This document shows positions 6,741 through 38,953 of a stretch of DNA of 52,692 bases, one piece after another. The stretch comes from Ministeria vibrans ATCC 50519. Taxonomy: Eukaryota > Protista > Filasterea. The stretch covers positions 9,435 to 62,126 of the forward strand of contig CALSCP010000986.1 in assembly GCA_943704425.1 (NCBI GenBank), given 5' to 3'. A program made the translations under genes and the position numbers. The notes beneath the pieces were generated by a model. The model was given only the letters and a program-made list of their open reading frames with translations, did not search any database and was not told the origin of the DNA. How positions within the stretch are numbered: position 1 is the first letter of the stretch; every line of letters starts with the position of its first letter.

Positions 6741-8497
6741 ATGCAACGGCACGCGTCTGTGACAGTACGATTTTGGCTGAGTGATTGTGTTGTGCGTTGG
6801 CTCAGTTTCATCCCTCCGACAGCTCGGCTCGAGTCTCCTCTTTGCTCCAGTAAACGAAATTAAGGCGGGCTCGCCCCATCTGAGCGCAGGATTTCGGGTA
6901 GGTGGCTGAAACGATCTTCTTACTCTTTTTTTGACGTGATTGTCACACTCTCTCACACTAAAACGAAACCTACGCGCTACTGAATAGGCACTGGTGCACG
7001 CAGGCTTTATCCAGCAAAGCGGTGCGGGATTGTACTCGTACTTGCCGATGGGACACACTGTCATGAACAAGCTGAGCCAGATAATCGATCGCGAGATGCA
7101 GTATGCGACGAAAGCACATTACTGAATGGTCTCGCGCCGTTTTGATTCGTCGTCTTCTTCTTCTTCTTCTTCTTCTTGTTAGACGCCTCAATGCCTCCCG
7201 CGTGACCCTTCCAACACTGATTTCGCGGAGTCTGATGGAAAAGACGTCGCGATGGGACAGGGTGGGCACGGAGTTGATGAAGCTGCGAGTGTCCAACCGC
7301 GACTACTGTCTGGCGCCCACACACGAAGAGGTGGCGACGGTGGTGGCTGCGGACGCATTGGTGTCGCCACGAAGTTTTCCGATTCGCATGTACCAGATTG
7401 AGAAGAAGTTTCGCGACGAGGCACGACCGCGCGACGGTCTGATGCGCAGTCGCGAATTTGTGATGAAGGACCTGTACACGTTTGATGCGACTGCGGCGGA
7501 GAGTCTCGCGACGTATCAGGACGTGTGTGGTGCCTACGAGCGTATTTTTGAGGCTATAAAACTGCCTTGGCGTAAGTGTCTTGCGGACACGGGTGTGATG
7601 GGGGGCGTGCAGAGCCACGAGTACCACGCCGAGTTGGCGCACGGCAATGCCAAGTCGGTGACGTGCAGTCACTGTCGTGCCTCTGTTGCTGCCGAACTGG
7701 CCAAGGTGCACATTGCACCCGCCGATCCGCTTGTTGTTGTACCAAATATGGCGGCGAACACGGAGACGATTGAGTTTGAACATGCACATGTGTCAGTGGA
7801 GGTTCCCAAGGGACGTACGGCAAGTATGGAAAAGGTGGCGGCTGTGCTGGCGCAGCCAACCGCGAATATGTCCCGAGAGCAACTGGTGGACCAGGCGCTG
7901 ACGAGCGGCAAGGTATGTGCGGGACGGCCGCTTGATCTGGTGGTGGCGGAGGGTGGAGATGTGTGTGGCTACTGCCAGGAGGGTTCGTACACGGCGACCA
8001 TGGGCGTTGAGGTTGCACATGCCTTCCAGCTGGGCACCAAGTACTCGGTGCCCCTTGACTGTCACCCGTTGCACCAGAAACAAAATCCTGCCGAAATGGG
8101 CTGCTTTGGCATTGGAGTGTCGCGTCTGATGCAAACACTGGCCGAGACGAGTTTGGACAAGTTTGGGCTGGTGTGGCGGGCGCGTGAGCTTGCGCCCTTT
8201 GATGTGGTGGTCGAGGCGGGTGCACACGCGAGCGAGGGTGCCGAGTTGGCGCACATGCTTTCCCAGCAACTTCCTGCCGACATGCGAGTGCTGCTGGAGG
8301 ATCGAACGTACATCAAGACGCGTCTGCTGATTGGCCATGCGGCGCAGTGTGGCATTCCGTTCCTTGTCAGACCCAAGAAGGATGGGCAAGTTGCCGTGCG
8401 CACACGGCAGTCGGGCGATCTGGGACCGTACGGCGACAGCGTCGTGGGTTCTCTCGCCGCGGCTGTTGAGTTGCTAGTTGAAGCAAGCAAAACGTAA
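6741..8497 (+). CDS. PARS2: Prolyl-tRNA synthetase, bacterial-type/mitochondrial
   Basis: Spliced 5' part ...ALVHAGFIQQSGAGLYSYLPMGHTVMNKLSQIIDREMQ. Motif 2 FRDEARPRDGLMRSREFVMKDLYTF, motif 3 MGCFGIGVSRL, C-terminal anticodon-binding domain. The start at 6741 and the first two introns are inferred. Confidence 0.9.
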
Positions 8498-12014: not shown

Positions 12015-13238
12015 ATGAGCAAAGGGCGACGCCGCAAAGAGAATGTCGCGCGCGCTACTGCAGCGGACCCGCCTGTGATTGAGGCGTTGCCACTTCGAGC
12101 GTACGTCTTACATTGATCAAATGGCACTTTGTTGCTTAGCAACAGTCTATAGCGCACTCTCTCCGCCGAAAGCCGATCTGCGACATCTCACTCTGCCGTG
12201 GCTCGTTGTTGATGCGCCGCTTATGGACGAGCTTGCATGTCTTACCGACACTATAGATGTTTCACGGCGTCTCAGGAGACATTTTTTCCCCTCCAGTTAC
12301 GACGATGGCGCTCTACCTTTGAGCGTCGGAGACAGCGCTCTCTTGGAGTACTATGTGCATCTGTATTGGTTTGCAGCTCGCGAACAGCGATTTCCTGCCA
12401 ATGTAGCGTCAGGCGTGCTCTCGGTGGGTCGCATTCTGATGCGTCTCATTGAACGGCACCTGTGCTCTCCGGCGACCTGTCTCTCCGTGCTTCGCTGGCT
12501 CATTGGCATTGATCCCGAAAGCAACGCATCTATGACACCCGAGCCACTCTTTTCCGCTGTGCAGGCGACACTGATTGCCGAGTTCTTTGACACGACGCTG
12601 TTAGCGCACATTCGACTGTACCAGAATCTGTTTGCAAGTCGCGCGCGCAATGGTAGCCATGAACCCACTGCGCGCGTCTTTTTGCATCTCGACTATCCCA
12701 TACTGCCCGATGCTGAGCCACTTTCACACGCCATTACATTGGTAATGGACTCTACAGGCGGCGAATGATGAAAGGAATTTGAAAGCGTTTGCACATGTAG
12801 GATGAGTATGAGGAGCGTGTGCGGATCGAGGCGGACCGACTAGCGGTGGAACAGAGGCGGGAGGCAGAGGAGGCGCTTAAGCGCGAGTTGGAGCGTGTCA
12901 GTGAGGGCAAGTTGAGCGGGGCACTAATTGACACACTGCGACGGATGAGTACTAGCGCGAGCCAGGATCAAGAGAAGGAGGAGAAAGAGGAGGATAAGCT
13001 TGCTGCACGGATGGTGGAGCTAGCTGTGACCGCAATGAGACACACCGTGAGTGTGGCGGTGGGGAGTGTGCGAGAGGCAAAGCAAGCAAGAGCACACGCA
13101 ATGGAGCGACTTGTAGGTGAGTTGGAAGAGCAAGTCGACCAAGAGCGACAACGGGAGGGGCAACTAGAGTGGGAAAGGTGGAAGAAGGAGGAGGAGGAGA
13201 AGACGAAGAAAAAAAGAAGAAAAAAAGGGAAAGTATGA
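12015..13238 (+). CDS. Flagellar central-pair C1a-32/CLAMP-domain protein (C8orf74/CABCOCO1-like) with coiled-coil tail
   Basis: LLEYYVHLYWFAAREQRFP and PLFSAVQATLIAEFFDTTLLAHIRLYQNLF match the CLAMP-family pattern as I recall it. Charged coiled-coil last exon. Intron boundaries approximate. Confidence 0.6.
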
Positions 13239-16137: not shown

Positions 16138-16255
16138 AATCGACTCGATAAACATTTGATTACTTTTACGAAAAGCGCGCCATTTTTTGTTATTTTTTTT
16201 TTTTGCTCTGTTCCCGCTGAAGCTTTCTTGCGATACACTGCCAACGACGATCCCA

Positions 16256-19200
16256 ATGCAGTCGTACGACACTGTATCGTACACGCAGGGACTGGCAGCG
16301 CCTGCTTTTTCGCGTGATGCGACTGCATCGACTTCCTCGGTCGCTCTGCCCTTCGCAGCCGCTCCAGCACGCCCGGCCGTCGCAGGCTTCCAAGGCTACG
16401 CCCCCTACAGCGGACTGCCTTTGGGCGGTACTGCGCCCCCGCCAGCGCTCGATGTTTCCTCCACAACAACATCTTTGCTACAACAACCGTCCTCAAGTGC
16501 ATCTGCGCTGAGCCGCTCTTCACAGCCCTCGGCGCCGACCCCCTTGTCAACGGCATGGCACAGCCCACCGCTGGAACCACGGGCACCCCGCGAATCGTCC
16601 ACAGCAGCAGCAACGACGGCCTCAACGGTTGACTTCACTTCTCCAACCTTTGCCTCGACACTCTCGTCGCTACGCCCGCCTTCCAGCTCGCCACACTCTC
16701 CCGCCAGTGTCTACACTCCCTACCGCGACCACGTCGCTCGCACCGCACTTTTTCCCGCACCTAAAGCGTCGTTGTCTTTCCCGCAACACCAACAGCACAC
16801 CGAGACATCAACAACACCCTCCACAACCGGACTCCTCTCCGCCTCCGCCTCCGCCTCTCGTCCTCCCCCTTCCTTTTCTTCTTCTTTCTCTGCTGTGCCT
16901 CCCACCTCCACCGCAATGTTCATGCCTCAACCATGGGTCATGTCCACCGCCGCCACAGGCGGCGAAGCTGGCTCGGGCGCCTTTATGCCCCCGCAGCGCA
17001 CGCCAAACCCAATGCCACAGACCGCGCCTGTCAACAGCCAGCCGCCAGTCAAGGAGAACCGCAAGAGGAAATCCAAGAAACGCCCACGCGTCCATGGCGG
17101 CGTTGGTGACGACAACTGCAACGACGACAACTGCAACGACGACGACTTCAACGACGACTTCTTTGACGATGAGACGTCGTGGCTGCCCAAGCGCACGGCC
17201 AAGTCATCAGTAGCGGCTGCGGCCGCGCTCATCACGTCAATGAAGGACGACACAGCGTTGAGCTCGCAACAGCTCGTGCTGAATCTACTCAAGACGGGCA
17301 TAGTGCGGCGCTCGAGTGTGCTGCGCTTCAAGGAGAGCATGGGCTATGTCACAGGCACAGGCATGATTGTGGCGCGCGAGTCCCGCAATATGTTTGTCAC
17401 GCTCGAGAGTTGGCTCGAGTCCGAGGGTCACGAAGGGCGACTGTGGCCTACGGCCAAGTGTGGTCGACGCACATTCAAGACACTCGAGGCGGAGCTAAAG
17501 CTGCTGCGTCGGCGCGCAATGAAGGCTGTCGACGAGACAAAGTGGAAGGCACTGCGCCAAGAGAAAATTGCACAGCCAGTGCTGCAGACGGCAGGCATGT
17601 GTGTGCGCTTTGGCATTGGTCCTACACTCGGCGTCACCAATGTGTGTTCGTCGCGAGGCTGGGGCACTGTGCGCCCCGACACCTTCGTCGAGGCGTGCTT
17701 CAACTGTGGTAGCAGTGGCAGTGCGCGCGAGCCCTTTGTTCGCTGTCGCCTCTGCTGCGAGCCTTACCACACCTACTGCGTCGATTTGCCGGCCAAAGAC
17801 GCACGCAAACCCGGTGTCCACGACGCTGTCGACGCGCCCGGTTCTCTGCCGGCGCTCATAAGCGACTTCCGATGTCTCAACTGTCTCGTGTGCGAACAGT
17901 GCTCGTTGGCCGAGCCCGAAAGTGAGCTGCTTGTGTGCGACGATTGCGAACGCGGCTATCACTGTCGCTGTCTCGAACGACCTCTTGACTCGGTCCCCGA
18001 CGGCACTTGGCGCTGCGACCTCTGCGTGCAGTGTCAAGTGTGTGGCACCCGTGACCCGGGCCCGCGCCTCAGCGACCGGTGGCAACTTGACTACACGCAC
18101 TGTCAGTCATGTGCAGACTCGCGGCGCAAGGGCAACGTGTGTCCCGGCTGCGACGGCGTCTACTCTGACGACGACTGGGACATTCGTATGCTGCAGTGCG
18201 ATGGCTGCGACCGGTGGGTACACCAGGCGTGTGCGCAACTCAGCGACGAGCAGTACGATGCCATTCAAATCAACGACAACTCGCTCTTCTTTTGCGAATC
18301 GTGTGGCCTTGCACACGATCGTCAGCAGTTCAATGCTCTGCGCGACGCCAACGATCACGTACGCGAGTGCTTCGATGCGGACAACACGGATGACGCTTTC
18401 CTCGGCTGGAGTCAGGAGGCGCTTTTGAGCGACCGCATTGCGCTGCATGCTTCCCTTGCGCGTGTCCTCGAGCGTCTCTGCGAGTCTCCTTCCTCGACGG
18501 TGCTGTTTGGTCGCCAACAACGAGAGACGTACGAGCAGGGAGAACCATTGATGGTAGACAGGCCAGTTTCTGAGTCAGTTGAATCTATGGAGGCAGAGGT
18601 GTCGCAAGGTGACGTGGAGAAGCAAGTAGGACTGGCGGAGAAGGCACAAGGACCGCGTGATGACGGCTCTGTCGCGAACGAGCCAGCTGTTGATGCTGAG
18701 TCGTGCGGAGTGGTTGAGTTGACACACGTTCGAGTGGTTCTTGTCGAGCCGGAACAAGACCTGCCCGATTCACGATGGATTCTCAGTGAGATTGTGCATC
18801 GCGTCACACACGGAGCGTACGGGTCTGTTGCTGACTTTGTCGCCGATGTGCGTGTGTTGTTCAGGACGATTGTTGGCGAGGCATTTGACTCGCCAGTGTG
18901 CCTCGAGGCCTGCAACGATGCCCATCGATGCTTTGCGATTGAGTTGACACGTGAGTTTGGCGAAGACATTGTCCGTGCGTGTGGCTGCGAGGTGTTTGTG
19001 GCTCCGGCTGCCGAGGTTGCAGAGGCAGTGCACACAGACGATGTCGATGGCGACGACGACCGTGCCACCGACGATGACGACAACAACGAGTGTGACGGTC
19101 CGTTGGTTCTCGCTGTGAGTGTTGCCCATCATGTTGCAGCGCTGGTGTCCTCAGGAAAGTCTTCGCGCAACAAACGCCATCGAAGCTCCCTCTCGAGCGG

Positions 19201-22026
19201 GTCGAAAAAACGAGGGTCCAAGGCGAAGAAGGCAGCAGCAGCTGCTGCTGCTGCTGCTGCTGCGGCCACTACGGCTACAACAGCTGCTCCTGACCCTTCA
19301 CCTGCGTCCTCGATGGTTGAAGGCACGACGAATGCCGAGGACGGAACGAGACTTGCAGTAGCGGGAGTGGAGGATGCTGAGCCCATTACTCGGGCTACAC
19401 CTGTGACACCTGTTGTGGTGGTGAGTGTTGAAGAGGAAGAGGAGGAGGAACGTGACCAACTGGCAATGGAGTCGTACCCGACGCCCGGCGACTCGCTAGT
19501 GTCGTCCACCTCACCCGATGCGACCACGACAACCGTAGTGGCAGCAGCAGCAGCAGCAGACGAAGAAGGAGACACGAGCGAGGCGGCTGACGTGGTCGAG
19601 GCTGAAGCGGCAACTGCTGCCACCGGCGACACTCGTATGTGTGCACTCTGTGGCGCAGTTGGTGATAAGGCACTCAAGGGCATGGGTCGTCTGGTTGTGG
19701 CGCAGCATGGTGAGTGGGTTCACATGGCGTGTGTGTGGTGGAGCAGCGAAGTGTGCGAACAGGGTGACGGAGCGCTAGTGAACTCGGCTAAGGCGATTCG
19801 ACGAAGTCGCACTCAGGCATGCACTGAGTGCACTGCGTTTGGAGCGACTATTGGTTGCTGCGAGGGCAAGTGTCTTGCCATGGTGCACCTGCCGTGCGCC
19901 AAGCGCAATGGTTACACCTTCCACGCGGACAAACGGGTCTTTTGTGCGGAACACGCAGCGCTTGGCGAGGGCCTGCCGCGCTTTAGTCTGGACACGCGAC
20001 GACATGTGTTTTACGTGGACTCGTCCTTTGTCAACCGGTCGCGACTGGCGCCTGGTGCGGATGCGCCTGAACTTGAGCGTGTCGAGCTTGTCCACGGCGC
20101 ACTGACTGTGCTCTCGATGGGTGTGGTGACGGCACGCCTGGGCTACCACACGAGCGAGTATCTTTATCCCATTGGCTTTTGTTCGCGTCGTTTCTTCTGG
20201 TCGACGGTGCGTCTCAACATTATTGTGTCCTATGTGTGTCGTGTGTGCGAAGGCGAAGACGGTCCCCGCTTTGAGTTGCAGTGCGAGGCAGATGGGTTAT
20301 TTGAGACGGCGGACACGCCCGGTGAGCTGTGGAAGCTGCTTGACGAACGTGTGCGCACCTTGAACAAGGGAGACGACGAAGAGGACGACATTGATGAGGA
20401 GGAGGAAGGAGATGGAGGAGAGAGAGACAACGACTCGACAACGACAGCAATGACGACAGCCGCAGCAGCAGCAAGAACGGCTTCTGGCGCGGCGGCGGCG
20501 GGGACAGTGGTGAAGCCTAAGAATGCGCACAAGGCGCTTCCTCTTGTGAGCATGGATGGCCACAGTTTGTTTGGCCTGTCGATGTACACGGTGGTGGAAC
20601 TTCTCGAGTCGCAGCCGGACGCGGCCGAGTGTGTTGGCTACGTATTTCGTGTGCGTCAGCGGCCGCCAGGTACGCCGTCACAGCGGGCGATTGAGTTGAG
20701 CAAGCCCATGGAGCTGGAGCACAATGCGAGTGGATGTGCGCGTGGTGAGGTGTACACGCGTCGTCGTCCGCACGACATGTTTGATTTCCTTCATGGCCTC
20801 CAGAGCCAGCGAAGTGTGCGCAATGCGTCTGCGATGCGACGGAATGCGTCTCAGTCAATGGACAGTGGCGCTGGCAGCGTCGGAGGCAGTGCCGACGATG
20901 GCGGTGCAGGCGCAGGTGGAGGTGTCGGAGGAGTTGGCAATGGGGGAGGTGGTGGTGGGAGCAGAGTGAGTGGCGGAGGCAGCAGTGGCATGGGTGGGTC
21001 GCTTGCGGGCGGTGGCGGTGCGCTGCCGTCGTCAATGAGCGAGGGCACGACCGTGGCAATGGGCGACTGTCAGCAGCTGCCCATGTCGATGCAGTACCGC
21101 ATGATGCGTGCTCACAGCAAAGCCGTGGCGGTAATTGTTGCTTACTTTTTCCATCGACTTTTTCTTACATTTTTTTTTGTATCACCATTCCTCCCCCTCT
21201 TCTATTAATTTTCTTTTCTCTCTTGTTTATCATTTCCTCCTCTTTTATCCCTTTTTTCTCCTCTCTTTCTCTATTGCTTTGTTTTTTCTCCTCCTCTCCC
21301 TCTCTCTCTCTCTGTGTGTGTGTATGTGTGTGTGTAGAAACGGTCTGGAATTCATGGAATGGGTTTGTTTTGCATCGAACCATACGAAGCGCACGAAATG
21401 ATCATCGAGTAAGCATATCACTTTTGTTCTCTCTCTCTCTCTCTATTTTTTCATTTAACTCCTCTGCGTTAGGTATGTTGGTACACTGGTTCGTAATCCC
21501 GTTGCGGATGCGCGAGAAAAGGACTATTTTTCACGGGTACAGAGCCATTTTGTTTGCGAGTGCGTTCGTCTCAATTCTTTCTTACTCTTTATTTCAATTT
21601 CTCGCTCGCTCGCTCGCTTGCTCACTTTTTACTTTTGGTGTGCTGTATGTTTATTAGGGCATTGGGACGTATCTGTTTCGGATTGAGGACGAGCTTGTCA
21701 TTGATGCGACTGTGGCGGGCAATGCCGCTCGTTTTATCAACCACTCATGCGATGTAAGTCATCTTGAGTAATGACCGTCGTATTATGTCAAACTCATGTA
21801 TAATTATTATTCCTTTTTGTGTGTGTGTGTTGAAAATGGGATTCAGCCCAATTGCTACTCGAAGATTGTGACAGTGGAAGGGCGCAAGAAGGTGATCATC
21901 TTTGCGCTGCGCAATGTGCATCGTGGAGAAGAGCTGGTGTACGATTACAAGATGGCGGAGGAGCCGGCGGAGGACAAGATTACTTGCTGCTGTGCCGCCC
22001 ACAACTGCCGTGGCACAATGAACTGA
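16256..22026 (+). CDS. Histone H3K4 methyltransferase, Trithorax/KMT2A-B (MLL1/2)-like
   Basis: PHD finger cluster (CFNCGSSG...CRLCCEPYH...CEQC...CDDCERGYH...CPGC...CDGCDRWVH), bromo-like segment, ePHD (WVHMAC...GATIGC), FYRN/FYRC, Win motif SGCARGEVY followed by HDMFDFL and [11 protein letters not shown] assembled over 4 introns ([29 protein letters not shown]|[12 protein letters not shown]), post-[11 protein letters not shown]. Confidence 0.92.
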
Positions 22027-28953: not shown

Positions 28954-31900
28954 TCAGACACACAAGTGACACAACAACTTGTTGACGGCAACATCCCAGG
29001 ATGGACCCAGCTGTAGACGGTAGGGCAGTGACGGCGTGGTGCGTTCGGCAACTTTAAGCCACAGATTGCCGCGTACCATCAGATGCTGCTGCGCAGAGTC
29101 AACAAAGCGTTGGGTCGCAAAGTAGGCACGCAAGACGGCCACCACAAGCGCCGTGCCAATAAGCGCATAGGCCCTCTCGCTTGCCTCCACGCCCAATGAC
29201 CGAATCCCCGCCATGTGCAGCATCTCCATAATTCGCTCGAGCGACGTACCCAACGCCCCGTGGAGAGACACGTCACGCACGTCCCACGCGCCGTCCGCAC
29301 GACAGCAACTCTTCAGACGTTCCATGTCCACTCGCGCTGCACACATTTTGATGCCCCGTGTCAGCTCGTCCGCCACCGGCACGTCCACACACAGCACCTT
29401 GTACATCAACCTGCCATCGTAGCCCCCTCGGTCGCGTGTCTGACTCTCCTCAAACCCAGTCGCCGTCTCGATAGTTGTTTCCTTCTCGGTGTTGCTCGAT
29501 TTCATAAACTGCTTCGATGACAACCGCCTCTGCTCCACCTCCTTCTTCATGCGTCGTGGTGACACACACTTCTCACTATGTACGTTGCGTATCACCTGGT
29601 CTCTCTGTTCTTCAAGTTCCCGCACGGTATCCGCCGGAATACTCTCCGTCTCCACCAACGATTGGAAATTCTCACGACGTCCACGTTCCTTCGGTTCCGC
29701 ATCTCCTGTCGACTGCACCTTGCTACGCAACCGCAGTTTCTTCAATGGCAACGGCGCTGTCACACTCGTCGGAGTGGGCACAACAGGCGTTGCTGCTACT
29801 GCTGCGGGCTTCTTGGGCATTGGCTTAGCCTTGGGCCGCGGCGCAACATTGAGTGCCTCACTCAGTTCTGATTCTTCTCGACTGTCACAAAAGCGCGCCT
29901 TAAACGAATGCGCTGGTGGCACAGCAGCAGCAGCGGCGGCAGCAACAAATAATTCGTGGTGTGCTGTTGATTCGGTCGTTTCCTCCTTGTCCTTGAAGAC
30001 CTCCCTGGCAATCTTGGAAGTACCACCACCATCCCCATCAGAACTCCAATCTTCATCGCTGCTACAATCATCGTCATCATCATCATCACCACCACCACCA
30101 CCACCACCACCACCACCATCACCACCACCACCAGGCCCACTTGCTTTGGTACTGCCGGCAAGTGTTGAGCGCCGACTCGACAGCATCGAGAGTAGACTAT
30201 CAAACGTGTCGGTGGGAGGTGCCTGTTCCGCGAGGGGCTTAGAGTCACGCGTGACAGGCGTCTTTGACAGAGACTTTCCGAAGCGGATGCTCGACAGTAG
30301 TCCCGCCCTTTCGCTTGTACTGGTCGATTCTTGCGCCGGAGCAGAATCTCTAACGGTAGCAAAGCCACTGGATGGTGGGGCCGGCGGCGGCGGCGGCGCT
30401 TGCACACAGGCGGGAGGCGGACAGGGTGCAGGCGAGGCTGCAGTGGCCTGGCAAAATTTGTTGCCACGAAGGCGGTCCGAAAGCGAAGCCATCTTGCCAC
30501 CACGAGAGGCACCCTTGCCACCCAACTTACCAAACAAGCCAGTGCGAGCGGTTTCCGTGGTCGGAGGTGCAGGAGGCGGAGGCGGACCGGCACCAAACGC
30601 AAGTCTTTGAGCAGGTGGTGGAGGCGGAGGTGGACCAGCACCAAACGCAAGTCCTTGGGCAGGTGGTGGAGGCGGAGGTGGACCACCGCCACCGACACTG
30701 GGTGGTGATGGTGCAGAAGAAGGTGCCGGCGGCGGAGAGAGTCTTCGGTGATGACTCCTTCCTAGTGCCACACGTGGCTCTTCCTGTGCCACCTCCAGCT
30801 TAGGTTTGATCACCAACATGTTCTTTTGCTTCTCATCAGGCAACGTGAAAAGTGAGGTCTCACCCGCATCGTCATCACACAGGTCCATCGAAACTTTGTG
30901 AAATCCTCCAAATTTGCGCTTCTTCATCTTCTTCTTTGTCTCTTCCCGTCGGTCCTCCTCTTCTTCCTCTTCTTCCTCCTCTTCTACTTCTTCTTGGCAC
31001 GCCTCCTCTAAATCGTACTCGCATTCATCCGCTTCGCCGCCCTCAAAATTGATGGCGTTCCCATACGCACCAGGTTTCCCGTTTTCACAGCTGTGCGAGT
31101 CCGAGAAAAACGACGTATCACTACGCATGTCACCGCCTTCTTCCTCGTCCATCGACGCGGAACCCCAAGAGTCAAGCGAAGATGCATTGTTCTCGTCTTT
31201 GATCTGTGCACTTCCAACGCTACCACTCGAATGACGGCGACTGTTATCGGCGGGTGCTGGCATGGCGGCCATCGCAAACGATGACGAGTCGGGAATCGGC
31301 GGACGAGGCGCACGCTCAAAAGGGCTGCGCAGCGAGAGAATGCCGCGCTTGCTGACCGCCTCATCGCCAATGTAGCTGTCCTTCTGGCCCATGCCTACCA
31401 TCACCCCTTGATGGCGGGGCCGTCCTACCAGCGACCGAAACACCGTATCGGGTGCTTCGTGGCCCGCAAACCCAGCCTATGAAAAATCCACAAAATGGAT
31501 CGTAATAATATTATAAATTAATACTAATAAATTTATTATTATTATTATTATTATTATTAAAATAATACTTTGTACCTTGGTTGTGTCCGCGCCCATGTCA
31601 ATGACACAGGGAAGAATATCGTCTTCCTCCATTGCCTGTGCTTCTTCCATCGATGCAAAAAAATTGTTGTCGTCATTCTTCTCCATGGGCTCGGGAATGG
31701 GTGGCGGAGTGGGGGCGTCGGCGCACTCAAACACAGACTTGTCCTTCACCGAAACAGCATCAACTAATTTGGGCGCATGAGGGGACCGTCGGTTTCGCCT
31801 TAGCGACTCCTGCCCCGCCGCTGGATCCATCTCTTTCTTGGGTTCACCGCGCAAGCGCAACACAAGGTGCAGAGTGGCATCCTCGCCGACGTTGTAGCTC

Positions 31901-34900
31901 TCCAGCAGATCCGAGTCCGCTCCCAACTGACGTCCACCAAAGATGATGCGTTGCTGGTCGGCTGGGATTCCTTCTTGATTCTGCACGGACCGCTTTAGAT
32001 CGGCCACAGTGACAAGGTCACTAACAGTGATTGTCTTGCCCGTGAGTGACTTCACGTGCAGTCGTCGTCGAGTGGCACGGTTTCGCGAGGGCACTCGTAA
32101 TGATTCGGCACTCGATTCTTGCACACGTCGACGCTCCTCCTCGCGTTCTCGCTTCAACTCGAGCTCGTCAAGACGCTCAGCTTCACGTTGCTCCTCAACG
32201 CGACGCTGCGCTTCGTCCAAAATCTCCTCGGCATAGCCCGACGACCCTCGCAGTTCGGCTGCAATCGTCGAGTGTTGCTCGGCGAGTCGCAGAAACTCGC
32301 TTGCGTACTCTTCGGCTTCGACGTGCGATCGCTCCTGCAACGCCATGCTCCACAGCTGTGCTGCACACTGCATACGAGTCCACACACAATCGTCATTGGT
32401 AGATTCGTTGTCATCGTCATCATCGGTGATCGTAATTTGCTCGGCGGCTCGCTCGTACACATTGCTGAGCATCAGGCGCGCACGCAGTGCATTGCCCATG
32501 GTAAACGCCTGGTCTGCCTCGCCCACAAGCTGCAACACGCGCACACGGTCGTGTACATCCACCGGACCACTAGTGCCACCACTCCCATCACCATCATGCG
32601 CAGACGACTCCTTGCTGTCGTCGTTGAAGCCGATGTACGCGAGCTCATCAACCGTCTCGGCAGCAACCAGCTCGGCAACAGAGGGCGCATCACGTGGTAC
32701 CTCTTCACCCTCGTGACGTTCCTCAATCGCCACAAAGCTAGTGTGCTGCGTGACAATCTGATACTCAATGCTCATGCGCGTAATAGCGTCCTTGGTGGTT
32801 CTCTTGCGCATCTTGCACTCAACGGCATCGTCCGCAAACGCGCCCTCTTCCCAGTCACGAATCATGCTGCGCGCCGCCAACTGGTGCAACGTACGCCCAT
32901 GGCGGTCCTTGTGGCCCTCGGCCGTGACCACCGTCTCAATGGGCATGCCATTGGCGCGAGCGTGCAGCTTCGCCTGACGACAGTACCCCACAAAGCCATA
33001 GATGAGCTGACGCGTGCCCGAATAGAGCGACACAATTCGAGCGGGTGCTTGCACGTTGCCATTGTCATCGCCGTCCGCATCGTCTCGGTGCGTGATCCAT
33101 TCAACACGCACATCGCTGAGTGCCATGCGACTCGCACGTTCAACTTGTGCGCGCAACTGATGCCGCCAGCGCGACTTCTTGTCGTCCACAAGCACCTCGC
33201 AACAGCCTCCGCCACACCGCGCCAGCGCACGTACCATGTAGCGTGCACAGCCTTCGCCACAGCCCACAGTGAACACACGCCACTGTTCACTGTGCGTGCG
33301 CACCTGTGCCTGCACCTGCACACCTCCACTTGACAGATTGCCATCTGTAAATACAATGGCATTGCGCACGTGCGATGATGACGACGACGACGACGACGAC
33401 GACGACTTGCACACGTGATGTTCTGTCTCGGTAAGCACATAAAGCGACTGAAGTGCGCTCGCAAGGTCCGAACCGCCCCAATTCGCTTGGGCGTGCGTTA
33501 CATAGTCAATCGCACGCAAAATGGAGTCACCATCGTGACACGGCTGTGCGGTGGGAAAGAGATAGTCGTGACCCGAACCAAAGGTAAGCAGATTGAAGCG
33601 ACAGGAGGACGCGAGGGTGGGATCGTCACGGAGCGACTCGAGCGTTCCAATGACGGCTGTTTTGAGCGAGGCCAGAGCGCCTTGTTCTGCCATGGACGCC
33701 GACTGATCCAACACAAGCACAATGTCGGTGTGGGCGGCACGCGGTGCTTCAAACTCGGGATAAAACGCGAGCATGCACGCCTGATGGCCCGACGTTGGAT
33801 CCATTTCAACAGTCATGCGCGGCACATGAATCTCGGCAAGGCCTACCAGAAGGGTAAAGTCACCGCCAAGCGAACAGGAGCCGGCATGCACCAATCGTGC
33901 CGTCGCGAGAGTGTCGGTGCGCTTGAGACGGACCGAATCGGCATGTGTGGGACTGACCAGGGTGCGAATAGGAAAGGGCATATTGACTGCGACCTCAATG
34001 GACATCTCGCCGCCATCATCTCCGTCCGTCTGCACCGTCTGCACGTCACGCTGAAGTGTTGTCGCAGCAGCGGCGTCGCGCTGACCGGGAGCCACCGAGC
34101 CCGGCAGTGTAAATGCAATGTCGTCGCCTTCGCACGCGAGCTCGGCCACATACGTGATCTTGATGAGCACCGTTGCCTTTGGCGGGAGATTGCCAACGCT
34201 CACAGTGAACACGTCGGGAGTCTCTTCGTCCATGAGGTAGGCGCCATGGCCCTTGCTGATGGCCTCGCGGTACTCGCGACGTGCCTGTTCCTTCTCTTTG
34301 ACAACTCCCACAACGTGTTTGCCATTGATGTACGCCTCAAAGCCACAGACGGCGGCGCGTTCGTCGAGCGGAAACACATACTTGGCCTCGATGGGCACCG
34401 TCGACTGGTTCTGGTAGCGTTGCAGCACGACCACACGCGACACCATGTCCTGCATGCGGGCACGCACATGGACAGCACGCAGCGGTAGACGCGCGCCACT
34501 CTTGCTCTGCAGACCCGGCACGATCTTTTCCATGGGGTTTGCCTGACTCAGTGGCTTTACGGCACCCTCACTGATATTGCAGTTGTTGTCGTTGTCTGTG
34601 GTTGGCGCTGAGACATCAAGAGTGAGAGGAGACGCCTCCGGCTGTTTTTGTTGTTTTTGTTGTTGCTGACTGATGTACTCGGAGAGGGACTGAGCGGGAG
34701 GTGGGTCAACGGGAAGGCGAAAGCGAATGAGATAGCGAAGGCGCTGTTGGGCTGGGGTATAGACGCAAAACTCGTTGCGGACAAAGTCCGACTGTGCGAC
34801 GCCCATGCTGCTGTGGAAGCCATCGGGGGCGCTGGTGAGGTGCGACTGGGGGCTCGTGAACTCTTTGGACTTGCCCAGAGCAACGTCACACACAAAGACA

Positions 34901-36727
34901 GAGCGCACACGGCTGGTGGGACCGGGCAGGGCAAAAGGAAGGGAGGTGGCAATCTCGTCGGCAAAGTAGATGCCACTGCCCAGCATGCCGCCGTCGGAGC
35001 GTCGCACACCATGGTCATCGACAGCAACGCTGGGCATGAGTAGACCGCGTTTGAGGATACCAAGGACATTGGCGGGGCGACTGGCGTGCAGCAGTCTACG
35101 CTGGTTGGGCATAGCGCGTGCATAGCGACGGTCGTCGGAGCGCCGGAGGACCTTGTAGACAGCGTCCACAATGAGAGTATCATTAGAAGTGGCAGCGCAA
35201 TCGGTGTTGTTGTTGTTGCTGTTGTTGTTGTACAGTGATGCACACACGTTGGCGTATTCTTCCGAAAGTGCGGCAACGGGAACAAGTTCGGCGCCCAGAG
35301 CATTGTAGCGCTGGTCCGTCTCGTTGCCCGACGAGCCACCGGCGGCCGCATGACCACATGACTCGGAGACGGTCGCTAAATCACGCATCAGTTGGCAAAC
35401 CTCGAGTTGTTGTGCAACCGCTGCGAGCGTGGTGAGCGGTGGTCGCTCAGGAGAGGGAACAAGGGCGTAGTAGTCGTTGGTGAGACGCTGAAGTGTCTTC
35501 TCTGTGGTCGTCGCATTCGTGTGGCGCAGAGTGTTTTCAAGCTGACGCAGCACCGCCTCGGCATCTTCAATGTGCGACAGAGCCAGGGCGCCCACGGGGG
35601 TGCTCACAAGATTTGCAAGTTCCGTTTCGGCGTCGGCAAACAGCTCGTTGACGACGTGCTGCAGAGCCGGCTCGAGGCTGGACGGAGGTGCCGCAGCACG
35701 GGCCCGAGGCGAACCAATGCGAACAGCAGTGAGACGCATCTTGCGACAGAGTGCGGGGGCGGCGGTAAGCTCCTGGTAGACGCAAGCGTAGAGTCGTTCG
35801 GCGTCGTCAAGGGTGTTGGCGTAGCGACAGGTAAAGGTTCCACCCATGGCTGCATTGCTGGTGTCCTTGTCGCTAAGTAGTGTCGACCGATCGATGCAAT
35901 GAGTAAAGACGCGATAGGGGAAGCGTCCACCCGTGAGCGCTTTGGCGGAGACGACGGTGGCGACGTGCAGTTCGACCGCACGATATTCCAGTGACTCATC
36001 AAAATGGTCATCGGCGTCATCATCGCGCGGCAGCGTAGCGGCAACGACACAGCCGCGCGCAATCGAGTAGGCGTCGTCGTCGAAGCACTCGGTGTTCCTG
36101 TCGGAAGGGAACGGCGTGGGTGTGTAGCGACGCAGAAAGTCTGAGTCGGACAGGACAGCAAGCGGATGGCCCGACGACAGAGCGGAGTGCGCAGGGGTAC
36201 AAGGAGTTGTCACCTTGGATGGTAAGGACGCTGCCCCAACGCGACCCTTCCTAAGCTCGTCGCTTGCGCCCAGTGCGACGGGAGCAAAGTCGCGAACTTG
36301 CTGCACAACGCCCGCGCCAAGCGACGCGCTGACGAAGCGCATCGTCACGATGGGGATGCCCCGCTTCTGCGCCGACTTGTACTTGAACGACGTTTCTTTC
36401 AGCCCCTCCGCGACGACGTGCGTGGTCTACAACAGACAGACAGAGGAACAAGCGAAACAGTCAGCAAAAAAAAAACCATAACATTTCCTTTTTTTTTTTT
36501 TTTTGAGTTGCGTTATTCAGAGAGGAAGGGAGTTTGAAGGAGCAATGGGAGAGATACGCGCGTACGTCGTCGGTGATGATGAAGGAGACTACGCCTCCGT
36601 TGCGTGTGATGGCGTTGCGGAGCTTTTGTTTTTCTTTGTAGCCCATGGAAGTGGGCAGATCCAGAGCGAACTGGAGGCCCTCGAAGAGTGTAGAGGGAGG
36701 GTCCTCCTGGCGACGCTGAGTTGGCAT
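28954..36727 (-). CDS. PARP4: Vault PARP (PARP4/VPARP) with inserted ubiquitin-like, actin-fragment and polyPro-WH2-C-A modules; ~2,510 aa
   Basis: Exons 36727-36566, 36426-31576 and 31476-28954 (both introns phase 0, GT-AG). BRCT; regulatory helices; catalytic H-Y-E (LLHAS, GIYFAD, RNEFCVY); VIT ([19 protein letters not shown]); VWA ([12 protein letters not shown]); C-terminal MVP-binding-like DGAW...GIRSLG...RLQLGPSWD. Confidence 0.92.
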
Positions 36728-36900
36728 GGTCAATGTGGAAAGTAAAAATTTTGATTTTTGACTTTTTTGACATGACATAGACAACAGAACCTTTCTGAAA
36801 CTGTTGATATTAAAATGCTCCAACTCCGAATATAATCAGCATTAAGAAAGTAATGAGCATAATTTATTGAATCATTGTAGACGGGTTTGGGGTTTGAGCG

Positions 36901-36904
<4 letters not shown>

Positions 36905-36987
<83 letters not shown>
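36905..36987. repeat. Long pure (GA)n microsatellite
   Basis: Direct reading, about 40 units. Confidence 0.97.
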
Positions 36988-36990
<3 letters not shown>

Positions 36991-37015
36991 GTGTGTGAAA
37001 TAGCAGTTTTGTCGC

Positions 37016-37846
37016 TCAATCAATCGGCTCGCAGTACGCCTCGGGAAAGATTCCCTCTTGGCCGTTACATCGGCCCTTCCTAGAATACACAGTAGTGAGC
37101 TTCAGCACAAAATACACACCAAGCCACGTACCACCAGCCATCTTCGTATTTGGCAGTGACGTCTACAATGTCCCCCTCCATAATGTTCAGCTCGTCTTCC
37201 TTCTGCGACTCATAGTCAAACAGCACACGTGCATGACCAATCACCGGTTCTTCCTCCTCCTCATACTACAGAGATGGAGTATGTTGAGAATAGTGAGTGT
37301 GAGCTCAAAAAAAGGTGTTGATGTTTCATACGTATTGCGCCTCTTGTTCGTCGTCGGAAAACTCATCTTGCGCAGACTGAGTGCTCGGTTGATGTGCTAC
37401 ACAGACAACACACAAAACAATCAGAATGCAACTATTATTCAAATTGTTATATCTTTCTGCGTACTGAGATTGGGTTTGCGCTCGTAACCGCCCACAGAAG
37501 AAATATCTTCAACAGTAAACAGCGCTTGTCTACACGCATTTTTTTAGCACGTCCCGTCCCATCAATCCGTGCACAAAAAAAACAGTGAAAAACTATTAAT
37601 TGAATGTTACCTATGATCGTGCGAATCCTGCTGGAGAGTAATCATGGTCTTGAACTCGTGGTCTGGCTTGCTCCGGCCCAGTGCCTCGCACAGCGAACTC
37701 TCCATCTTGTAGATGGTCGCCCGCAGGGACAAAATCCGCCGTTTGTTGTCGTTTAGTTGCTCCATCACATCAGCCTAAGCATTATAACATCATTATAATT
37801 ATTATATCACCTGGATACTCTCTCCTTCTATATCTCTTTGTATGTG

Positions 37847-37881
<35 letters not shown>

Positions 37882-38953
37882 CTGTACCTGGCCCTGCTCG
37901 TCCGCAAATGACGGTGTCTGGTTGTAGCGTTCAGCGAGGTTCTCAATTCCAGCAAGGGTCTTCTCTGTGGCTCTCAAGTCCTCCTCAAACACCCGAATGC
38001 GCTGCTCGAGACGCGTCTGACGCCGTTGCGCGTCCATTGGATTGCGCTTATCCTCCTCCTACATACATATATGTACACACACAGAGAAAGGAGGAATGAA
38101 GAGAGGAATAAAGAGAAAGAGAGAGAGAGGAGAAAGAAACAAAGTGATAGAGAGAGAGAGAAAGTGTGTGTGTGTGAGAGAGAGGAGGGAGAAGGAAAGA
38201 CACAAAGTGAAAGTGATAGCAAAAGACAGTAAAATAAATGTGAGTGAGTGTGTGCAACTCGCATAAGAGCTGATTGTGGTACGTAGCAGTCGTAAAGGAC
38301 CTCGGGCGGTCGTGTAGAGCCCGTTCCTTTAATTTCAGCCGCTTTTTGAATATCTCCAAGTTCGTCAATGGATGTCACAGCAGATTCCAATCGAGAACAT
38401 CCCTATAAAAGAAGAAAAATGAGTTCGTTCATTCTATTCGTTTTTTTTTCTCTATCATGTTTGGTACCGTTTCGTGTTCGTGAAGGAACGACTGCAGATT
38501 CTGTTGGTACTGCGACAAAAGAGCCTTCAAGTAGCTTAATCGCGATGCTTCAAGCACTTGCAATTCCTATAATACAATAATGAAAAAATAAAATACAATA
38601 GATTAAAGCCCATCCTCGCTGGTTCTCTCTCCCTCACACACAATCTCATTGGTCGCTCCTCTCCCACACCCAACGTCGCCCAAACATCTCTCTGTCACTT
38701 GTCTCTCACTGCGTACATGGCACCCGTGCTCCATTGCGGCCTCCCACTGCCGTCGTGCCTTCTCCAGCTTCTTCACGCCCACTCGGTACTCCTTGTCCTT
38801 CTTCTCAACCTCCTCCTCCAGCTTCTTCGCACTCTTCAGATACTTGGAAATTTCCTTGTCCGTGTACACACGCCCCTTGCCACTGTTGGCGCTCGTGTAC
38901 TGGTCCCAAGCCGTCTCCATATCGCGCACTTTGAAAAAGTACGATCTCTTGAG
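37016..38953 (-). CDS. NOSTRIN: F-BAR + HR1 + SH3 protein, NOSTRIN-like (5' part lost at the assembly gap)
   Basis: F-BAR C-terminal half ([17 protein letters not shown]), PEVLYDCY|[15 protein letters not shown]1 ([17 protein letters not shown]...IYKM), SH3 ([21 protein letters not shown]...DGWW|KG...GIFPEAY). Confidence 0.8.

Follow-up and report, generated by a model that had tools for sequence, protein, structure and literature searches.

A single PARP4 gene on the minus strand of a 52,692-nucleotide stretch of the Ministeria vibrans ATCC 50519 genome (contig CALSCP010000986.1; the whole stretch is called the window below) carries, between its ADP-ribosyltransferase head and its vault-binding C-terminus, a linker in which a copy of ubiquitin, the beginning of actin, polyproline runs and a WASP-like WH2-central-acidic (V-C-A) segment follow one another in one chain. 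On balance, we think it probable that this linker is a string of docking modules that would bring client proteins, here mainly the actin-assembly machinery, to a vault-anchored ADP-ribosyltransferase. PARP4 outside vertebrates has constrained modules between enzyme and vault anchor, among them an exact actin D-loop, a ubiquitin predicted to be non-removable and a WASP-like V-C-A, and these give direct experimental handles on vault PARP function.

One gene in three exons

Two very long open reading frames (ORFs), 99 bases apart, lie on the minus strand between 36727 and 28954, and with a short exon upstream they make up one PARP4 gene of three exons and 2,511 codons without an internal stop. 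Its parts are the following.

36566-36727, minus strand: exon 1, 54 codons, read from the sequence, with the ATG at 36727 and the first half of the BRCT domain
36427-36565, minus strand: intron 1, 139 nucleotides, GTACGC...TGTTGTAG, phase 0, with BRCT in frame on both sides
31576-36426, minus strand: exon 2, 1,617 codons, a single continuous ORF
35305-35682, minus strand: PARP regulatory (helical) domain (PF02877, E 8.6e-11)
34669-35262, minus strand: PARP catalytic domain (PF00644, E 4.8e-20)
34150-34482, minus strand: VIT domain (PF08487, E 1.2e-38)
33199-33726, minus strand: VWA domain (PF13768 and PF00092, E 2e-11 and 2e-10)
32599-33198, minus strand: post-VWA region of PARP4 type (phmmer against 20 PARP4s)
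32074-32598, minus strand: helical-repeat region, six helices with a long helix at the end (AlphaFold2, mean predicted local distance difference test score, pLDDT, 84)
31837-32061, minus strand: ubiquitin module (PF00240, E 2.9e-17 at ORF residues 1430-1500, window 32061-31849)
31576-31644, minus strand: acidic run and actin residues ~5-18 (alignment with actins and 27 PARP4 actin pieces)
31477-31575, minus strand: intron 2, 99 nucleotides, GTACAA...CATAG, phase 0, 13% GC
31312-31476, minus strand: actin residues 19-72, subdomain 2 whole (E 4e-20 against PDB actins)
30514-30768, minus strand: proline-rich repeats, ~2.5 copies of polyproline followed by an L-A-F-G-A-G-type motif
30253-30312, minus strand: WH2-like motif (V) (Pfam WH2, E 0.0036)
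30151-30210, minus strand: C-like amphipathic motif with an RR pair (dictyostelid C-A profile, E 1.4e-5)
30028-30087, minus strand: acidic (A) motif with one Trp (DEDW) behind a poly-Gly run (C-A profile)
28969-29331, minus strand: MINT (MVP-interaction) domain at the extreme C-terminus (PARP4 C-terminal profile)
28954-28956, minus strand: stop codon, end of the PARP4 ORF

The full domain order is a putative BRCT, PARP regulatory, PARP catalytic, VIT, VWA, helical, ubiquitin, actin ~5-72, proline-rich, WH2-C-A and MINT. The translation of exon 1 is stop-free, and exon 2 holds the end of BRCT, the PARP regulatory and catalytic domains, VIT, VWA, the post-VWA and helical regions, ubiquitin and the start of actin. 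Intron 2, which holds an (ATA)n run and has 13% GC compared with ~55% for the window, splits the actin piece between the codons for K18 and A19. Its final three bases, TAG, are in frame, and the translation of the first long ORF stops there, so that a retained intron would truncate the protein and the C-terminal 840 codons need splicing.

The ubiquitin, actin and WH2-C-A parts belong to one gene, not to adjacent genes, since the ORFs are continuous and the actin homology spans a canonical phase-0 intron; an earlier note on this DNA had argued the same, and none of its coordinates was off by more than a few codons. Taken together, the features it described go well beyond what chance would give. 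Each exon was searched separately, and what supports BRCT and the opening 14 residues of the actin piece is their two halves taken singly and relatives in which they are contiguous. The nearest relative found, a 7-kb metagenome contig (L003) with a core 54% identical to the window protein, has a 1,350-codon ORF in which one exon holds the whole actin piece and reads through the position of the window intron, which independently confirms the splice junction.

PARP4 sequence on both sides of the linker

The domain set, the best matches, the match to a MINT profile and an intact catalytic triad identify this gene, by sequence homology, as the PARP4 (vault PARP) orthologue in a relative of animals that is not itself an animal. 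Exon 2 finds PARP4 proteins as its best matches, at 35-46% identity over the core, and the H-Y-E triad (H in LLHAS, Y in GIYFA, E in NEF) is complete when the protein is aligned with eight PARP4s, as the earlier note had stated. The BRCT domain, split by intron 1, gave a weak Pfam match below the cut-off from exon 1 alone (E 0.008). Behind the VWA domain, homology continues for ~200 residues: the post-VWA region matches 20 PARP4s at 84-150 bits by phmmer and is colinear in all of them.

At the other end, the last 120 residues of the downstream exon match a MINT profile (55.7 bits, E 1.1e-16, positions 10-144 of 159) that was built from 45 PARP4 C-termini with the cat (Panthera) PARP4 as seed and is hence independent of the window. 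Residues 1570-1704 of human PARP4, which are MINT, are the top PDB match of the C-terminal stretch (E 0.023), and sponge and cnidarian C-termini match it in BLASTP at E 1e-8 to 2e-11. The post-VWA homology and the MINT match together place PARP4 sequence on both sides of the linker modules, and the PARP4-type flanks claimed in the earlier note are thus borne out.

In human PARP4, the MINT domain holds the protein inside the vault shell. It docks onto MVP repeats 3-5, where human K1618 forms a salt bridge with MVP D214 (PMC12280208). The window protein keeps S1614 of the human MVP contact and has Glu in the place of K1618 (window ~29180-29190); to judge from the sequence, if the protein binds an MVP, the K1618 contact must be made differently or be compensated in MVP. 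The 52.7-kb window itself holds no MVP gene.

Human and other vertebrate PARP4s have PARP, VIT, VWA, the post-VWA region, MINT and probably BRCT in common with the window protein. No ubiquitin, actin or 14-3-3 match was found in vertebrate PARP4s, where a loose WH2 pattern gave no match in the linker. What vertebrates have in its place is a disordered, proline-rich exon; it is positively selected, and in mammals it has been suggested to be a host-pathogen interface (Daugherty 2014, PMC4038475), in keeping with the earlier note's description of the mammalian region as fast-evolving.

An ancient and constrained piece of actin

The first 55 codons of the downstream exon (31476-31312) correspond to actin residues 19-73 at ~80% identity (E 4e-20 against PDB actins), with a Pfam Actin match over profile positions 18-67 (E 2.5e-8), and actin residues 5-18 are covered by the ~14 codons with which the upstream exon ends (at 31576). 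The piece amounts to the first three strands of subdomain 1 and the complete subdomain 2, so that of the four-subdomain actin ATPase fold with both phosphate loops only residues ~5-72 are present; the earlier note had placed actin residues ~1-72 at 31632-31312 across a clean phase-0 intron, and the observed extent differs from this only at its start. The D-loop (H40 to D51) is identical to that of actin letter for letter, and the first phosphate-binding loop is degenerate (D-M-G-A-D-T-T-K). In actin filaments, the D-loop inserts into the cleft of the neighbouring subunit, and several actin-binding proteins contact it.

Several features set the PARP4 copies apart from actins themselves. All PARP4 actin pieces start at about residue 5 behind a conserved acidic run, and every one has a D-x-G-M/S-x-x-x-K-A-G loop where actin has DNGSGMCKAG. 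The non-bilaterian, Capsaspora and window copies have S-P-F-E-R in place of actin Y-P-I-E-H, and the bilaterian pieces end near residue 58. These shared derived residues, absent from actins, argue for one ancient acquisition of the actin piece as opposed to repeated capture or ongoing gene conversion by actin genes. Shared intron positions were considered as proof of common origin and discarded as uninformative, since they differ among lineages: the intron lies at K18/A19 in the window, introns lie at ~7/8 and at Q41/G42 in Nematostella, and Mytilus and L003 have none.

The actin piece is under strong purifying selection. Between the window and L003, 45 of 58 residues (78%) and only 19 of 58 codons are identical, with a proportion of synonymous differences (pS) of 0.72, which is saturated, a nonsynonymous rate (dN) of 0.20 and a dN/dS of ~0.08, not the ~1 of neutral evolution raised in the earlier note. 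The remainder of the C-terminal half cannot be aligned between the two, save for a weak MINT match. AlphaFold2, run on the contiguous L003 actin piece with no alignment, gave an unusable model (pLDDT 45).

A ubiquitin copy within the chain

The ubiquitin module, located in the earlier note at 32061-31843 and found by Pfam at very nearly the same place, is identical to ubiquitin at 39 of 76 residues. It keeps the L8, I44, H68 and V70 positions (the I44 patch), has Arg in place of K48, and ends in LRLRGE-P instead of LRLRGG, inside the chain and without a free or cleavable Gly-Gly. Among the 17 PARP4 ubiquitin modules compared, nine have a GG-Pro end and 13 lack K48. Ubiquitin that is followed by Pro or lacks Gly76 resists deubiquitinases, and without K48 it cannot be extended there. 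The Pro or Gly76-less end, together with the missing K48, would make the module a permanent ubiquitin surface. In L003, no ubiquitin is detectable by Pfam, from which the module appears to be less fixed than the actin piece.

Between the post-VWA region and ubiquitin lies the helical region (32074-32598), whose AlphaFold2 model has weak, TPR-like Foldseek matches (best E 0.02, template-modelling score 0.4). A 14-3-3 module like those of Capsaspora, sponges and dictyostelids was sought in the window and set aside as unproven: the PARP4 14-3-3 profile has no match, and hhalign gives a probability of 0.1%.

Proline-rich repeats and a WASP-like V-C-A segment

Polyproline runs stand at 30661-30681, 30613-30633, 30571-30585 and 30382-30396, and polyproline with FG-type repeats comparable to those of the window also occurs in Hydra and dictyostelid PARP4. 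Behind the proline-rich region come a WH2-like motif, a C helix and an acidic stretch with Trp, in the motif order of the WASP family; the earlier note had described polyproline and a WH2-central-acidic segment at 30312-30031, and the segment is seen at 30312-30028. The WH2 motif reaches 17.4 bits in Pfam (E 0.0036) against a cut-off of 23.1, its single PDB match is to the N-WASP WH2 repeats (E 0.028), and a WH2 above the Pfam cut-off stands at the same relative place in PARP4 of the sponge Oscarella (E 5.5e-8). For C-A there is no curated model. Profiles of the V and C-A parts of dictyostelid PARP4-like proteins were run on 100-residue tiles of all window ORFs, and in both the best of 1,286 tiles was the window site (E 0.0023 and 1.4e-5). 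The C motif alone had no match in PDB, and the PDB matches of the whole VCA stretch were swamped by poly-Gly linkers.

WASP-family proteins engage G-actin and the Arp2/3 complex through WH2, C and A, and profilin or SH3 domains through polyproline. The likeness of the window to the VCA of WASP and Scar/WAVE lies in a proline-rich stretch, a WH2-like motif, an amphipathic basic C helix and an acidic stretch with one Trp, in the same order, and we take the C-A part to resemble that of Scar/WAVE. The differences are that WASP and Scar/WAVE have a WH1/EVH1, SHD or GBD head, of which the window PARP4 has no Pfam match, and that their VCA stands at the C-terminal end, whereas the window motif is internal, with ~360 residues, including MINT, behind it.

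Distribution among PARP4 relatives and origin of the modules

An exhaustive search with a core profile yielded ~115 PARP4-like cluster representatives and was followed by local searches and a search for long proteins with the actin piece. The actin piece stands behind the post-VWA region in PARP4 of Capsaspora, the ctenophore Bolinopsis, six sponges and five cnidarians, and also in PARP4 of many bivalves and gastropods, two hemichordates, two crinoids, a tunicate, an acoel and a flatworm. PARP4-like proteins of sponge, mollusc, acoel, flatworm, diplonemid and Euglena origin have a ubiquitin module at the corresponding place, and full or half 14-3-3 modules occur in the linkers of dictyostelids, Capsaspora, sponges, lancelet, hemichordates and gastropods. 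This linker holds further pieces as well. Oysters and Dreissena have an Hsp70 substrate-binding domain; Pinctada (P0236, 1405-1535) has four calmodulin-like EF-hands directly behind the actin piece; Dysidea (P0199, 1653-1708) has a synaptobrevin SNARE motif further along the linker; and dictyostelid linkers have YSPTSPS heptads like those of the C-terminal domain (CTD) of Pol II. In Dreissena (P0221, ~1480-1497), a 15-residue stretch behind the actin piece is, by eye, what we take to be the histone H3 tail (residues 2-17). The C-terminal motif of the ribosomal P-stalk, an acidic run followed by M-G-F-G-L-F-D, occurs in linkers of dictyostelids, sponges, oysters and a crinoid (P0005, P0046, P0048, P0049, P0058, P0076, P0135, P0199, P0213, P0225, P0237 and P0238); the window has it only in a degenerate form, acidic-SLF, at exon-3 residue 201. 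The set of pieces thus differs between lineages, a point that the earlier note had proposed to check.

Among the closest known counterparts, the sponge PARP4s Dysidea avara X2 (P0199) and Oscarella lobularis X4 (P0210) have the module order of the window from BRCT to the MVP-interaction domain, with cores 37-38% identical to the window protein and an alignable MINT. They differ between VWA and the actin piece, where Dysidea has ubiquitin and Oscarella half of a 14-3-3, and in the actin piece itself, which is ~73% identical to that of the window in Dysidea and ~39% identical over a longer stretch of 180 residues in Oscarella. Beyond the window set, Dysidea has the synaptobrevin SNARE piece and a P-stalk tail motif, and Oscarella two WH2 motifs and the 14-3-3 half. 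Full-length Nematostella isoform X1 has the core, actin piece, polyproline, a WH2-like motif and MINT. Capsaspora owczarzaki (P0205), with a 14-3-3 half and no ubiquitin match, has a core clearly diverged from that of the window protein (tree path length 2.24). The dictyostelid PARP4-like proteins (Cavenderia P0048, Synstelium P0005, P0046, P0049 and P0058) share core, polyproline, V, C and the acidic Trp stretch with the window but differ from it in a full 14-3-3, Pol II CTD-like heptads and several P-stalk motifs, and in having no actin or ubiquitin piece; their C-termini gave no match to MINT in the searches run. A clear C-A segment with Trp was seen only in the window and in dictyostelids.

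A quick maximum-likelihood tree of the core, rooted at its midpoint and including a window row of unusual composition, groups the animals in a supported clade; the window and L003 fall outside it, beside Capsaspora. By sequence comparison, the modules are inherited parts of an ancestral non-vertebrate PARP4 linker and not a local insertion, and they were lost in vertebrates and not gained in the window gene. The earlier note's view of an insertion within one gene has to be given up on this point, as the same actin piece is found in the PARP4 of many lineages; its caveat that similar fusions might already be annotated in invertebrates proved well placed, such fusions being annotated in many invertebrate PARP4 models.

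The architecture itself is not new, since non-vertebrate PARP4s with actin, ubiquitin and WH2 modules are already recorded. PARP4-like proteins with 14-3-3, with actin or actin-binding domains (Salpingoeca rosetta, Capsaspora and Acanthamoeba) and with ubiquitin-related domains were reported by Perina et al. 2014 (PMC4245714), and the likeness of Capsaspora, S. rosetta and Acanthamoeba to the window is that of PARP4-like proteins with actin, actin-binding, ubiquitin-related or 14-3-3 additions. That study gave domain cartoons without boundaries, conservation or mechanism and inferred only a general link to the cytoskeleton (PMC4245714). In the literature searched, no paper delimited the actin piece, its conservation, the V-C-A motif or a bait function. 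What is added here is the extent of the actin piece with its single origin and constraint, a ubiquitin predicted to be non-removable, the V-C-A shared with dictyostelids, and the breadth of hub-protein pieces.

Some gene models call for separate mention. In Nematostella (L001; P0024, P0171, P0174 and P0175 as against P0172), only the longest isoform, X1, reaches MINT, while X2-X5 keep the actin piece and end ahead of polyproline and MINT; some PARP4 isoforms may therefore not be vault-anchored. In Mytilus edulis (L002, 55118-55505), MINT (Pfam PARP4_MVP-ID) is annotated as a separate gene just after the PARP4 model. This is probably a split gene model; other Mytilus records have one protein. 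The EF-hand-bearing Pinctada model is a draft that ends abruptly, and a fusion artefact may lie behind it. The 'Nup133' models with Actin from fish and coelacanth (P0194-P0197) most likely represent read-through annotation of neighbouring genes, so a long protein with an actin match is not always genuine.

A probable string of docking modules

Within the linker, the modules are recognisable and conserved and the sequence between them is not. If the linker is read as a string of docking modules, it would be a flexible tether between the PARP-VIT-VWA head and MINT, studded with modules that would place partner proteins beside a catalytically competent ADP-ribosyltransferase and the vault. The predicted partners are profilin-actin or SH3 proteins for polyproline, G-actin for WH2 and the Arp2/3 complex for C and A. 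With its D-loop and subdomain 2 intact and on display, the actin piece could fill sites into which an actin subunit would normally place its D-loop, which is the simplest role for a constrained D-loop copy. The ubiquitin copy, presumably neither removable nor extendable at K48, would bind ubiquitin-binding domains. The output would be ADP-ribosylation or vault capture of the recruited clients.

The linker pieces of other lineages, namely 14-3-3, the Hsp70 substrate-binding domain, EF-hands, the SNARE motif and P-stalk tails, are binding-competent as well, and this fits the same logic. So do the surroundings of vaults in Dictyostelium, which are ribosome-rich and membrane-associated, PARPs and 87% of ribosomal proteins having been labelled around vaults (PMC13100048). 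Of the two ideas put forward in the earlier note, a display of baits for pathogen effectors and a tethering of vaults to the actin and ubiquitin machinery, tethering appears to fit the binding motifs best.

Several points weigh against a string of docking modules. The roles of the linker modules in binding and catalysis are predicted ones. The WH2 score of the window is below the Pfam cut-off, and the site escaped a combined V-C-A profile when whole ORFs were searched. L003 is without a recognisable ubiquitin and without a Trp in its acidic motif, so not all linker modules are indispensable. The actin piece lacks two strands of subdomain 1, and with a pLDDT of 45 for the L003 copy it may not fold by itself. 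By analogy with human vaults, MINT may anchor the protein in the vault lumen, where the linker may not reach filaments or Arp2/3.

Less likely readings: decoys, self-regulation and debris

The other idea of the earlier note was an integrated decoy. Taken somewhat more broadly than in that note, the linker would show the recognition surfaces of hub proteins which pathogen effectors attack or require as cofactors, and an effector engaging them would be ADP-ribosylated or trapped in the vault. We regard this as unlikely, yet there is circumstantial evidence for it. The pieces are surface-bearing fragments and not working enzymes: a D-loop with a degenerate nucleotide loop, a ubiquitin with an unusable end, only the substrate-binding part of Hsp70, a SNARE motif without a membrane anchor, EF-hands and P-stalk tails. 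They are unusually close to their parent proteins, and the set differs between lineages, as noted above. The equivalent mammalian exon is positively selected and has been put forward as a surface where host and pathogen meet (PMC4038475), TEP1, a partner in the vault, combines NACHT with an active TIR-like NADase domain (bioRxiv 10.64898/2026.05.01.722283), and amoebae have BRCT-TIG-TIR-like-NACHT-TPR proteins that end in a full actin. Against this stand the age of the actin piece, hundreds of millions of years, and the strong constraint on it, for an ancient and static piece is at odds with a fast arms race there; WH2, C and A serve in binding and are not what effectors typically target; and ordinary recruitment of host partners also explains every piece and predicts the age and stasis of the actin piece just as well. 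Nor is PARP4 a receptor of the STAND/NLR type. Plant NLRs with integrated domains resemble the window protein in being host proteins with copies of unrelated host domains in a lineage-variable set, but they are built on a STAND NTPase chassis, whereas the window protein has PARP-VIT-VWA and no NACHT or NB-ARC domain, and their integrated domains are recent and variable, whereas the actin piece of the window is ancient and static. What stands of the earlier note's decoy idea is circumstantial, namely the lineage-variable set and the near-parent pieces; the ancient, constrained actin piece and the non-NLR chassis tell against the rest.

A wider form of this idea, to which we give slightly less credence still, is that the non-vertebrate PARP4 linker as a whole is an ancient, lineage-variable bait string with which vault, PARP and TEP1 would trap or sense pathogen effectors that attack or make use of hub proteins. 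Its contents may include ubiquitin, the D-loop, 14-3-3, Hsp70, EF-hands, P-stalk, CTD heptads, SNARE and possibly the histone H3 tail. If this were true, vertebrates would have swapped the string for a fast-evolving disordered exon with the same job, and the immune role of vaults would be older than animals.

The amoebal NACHT proteins are represented by Balamuthia mandrillaris (P0204) and by P0193, P0200, P0202, P0203, P0206 and P0207 from transcriptome and JGI records, with BRCT, TIG, DUF4062, NACHT, NPHP3-type TPRs and a C-terminal actin. Here the actin is complete (Actin E 1e-134), and DUF4062 is a TIR-like NADase domain. A STAND/NLR-like protein fused to a whole actin may be relevant to the use of actin as a sensor or bait domain.

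The VCA motifs of the WASP family are a classic case of auto-inhibition. The modules of PARP4 might likewise act within the chain, the actin and ubiquitin pieces serving as pseudo-substrates or acceptors of automodification, or folding back on WH2-C-A or VWA to keep PARP4 inactive until its release. An intact triad in the same chain as the conserved pieces would suit such a role, as would the conserved acidic run ahead of the actin piece. We nevertheless consider it improbable: every actin residue known to be ADP-ribosylated either falls beyond the piece or is changed within it (the window has Asp at position 28), and the piece has no WH2-binding cleft, so that direct contact between WH2 and the piece is not expected. 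That the modules are an artefact or neutral debris, whether from misassembly, read-through into a neighbour or exon-shuffling remnants in a disordered linker, is very improbable, for although some long actin-fusion models in databases look like read-through (the fish Nup133-actin models) and the EF-hand fusion of Pinctada rests on a draft model with an abrupt end, the window ORFs are continuous, the same module order recurs across dozens of genomes and transcriptomes of independent origin and on a separate metagenome contig, and the dN/dS of the actin piece is ~0.08.

Neighbouring genes and repeats

Directly upstream of PARP4, on the minus strand at 37083-38400, lie exons of a TOCA/CIP4-family gene (HR1_TOCA E 3.8e-7, SH3 E 1e-10). 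In animals, this family activates N-WASP and Arp2/3; the position of a TOCA-like gene beside a V-C-A-bearing PARP4 may be a coincidence. On the plus strand, a 1,673-codon ORF at 16187-21205 with PHD fingers, FYRN and FYRC is an MLL/KMT2-like histone methyltransferase gene, and a single exon at 7103-8494 encodes a mitochondrial-type prolyl-tRNA synthetase, the best relatives of which, from a search of 5.8 billion protein clusters, are only 31-48% identical, as would suit a lineage with few sequences among them. An ORF at 12079-12765, also on the plus strand, matches the flagellar C1a complex subunit C1a-32 (CLAMP, E 6e-6), and flagella are thus to be expected in the organism. With the position in the PARP4 tree, the TOCA-family gene and this flagellar gene make a unicellular, flagellated relative of animals the most likely source of the DNA. 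A human origin is rejected in view of the 4.8-kb exons, the introns of 99-139 nucleotides and the protist-like neighbours. Long (GA/CT)n and (CA/GT)n microsatellites, at 36864-36998 and 37830-37960, are found between the start of PARP4 and the TOCA-like gene.

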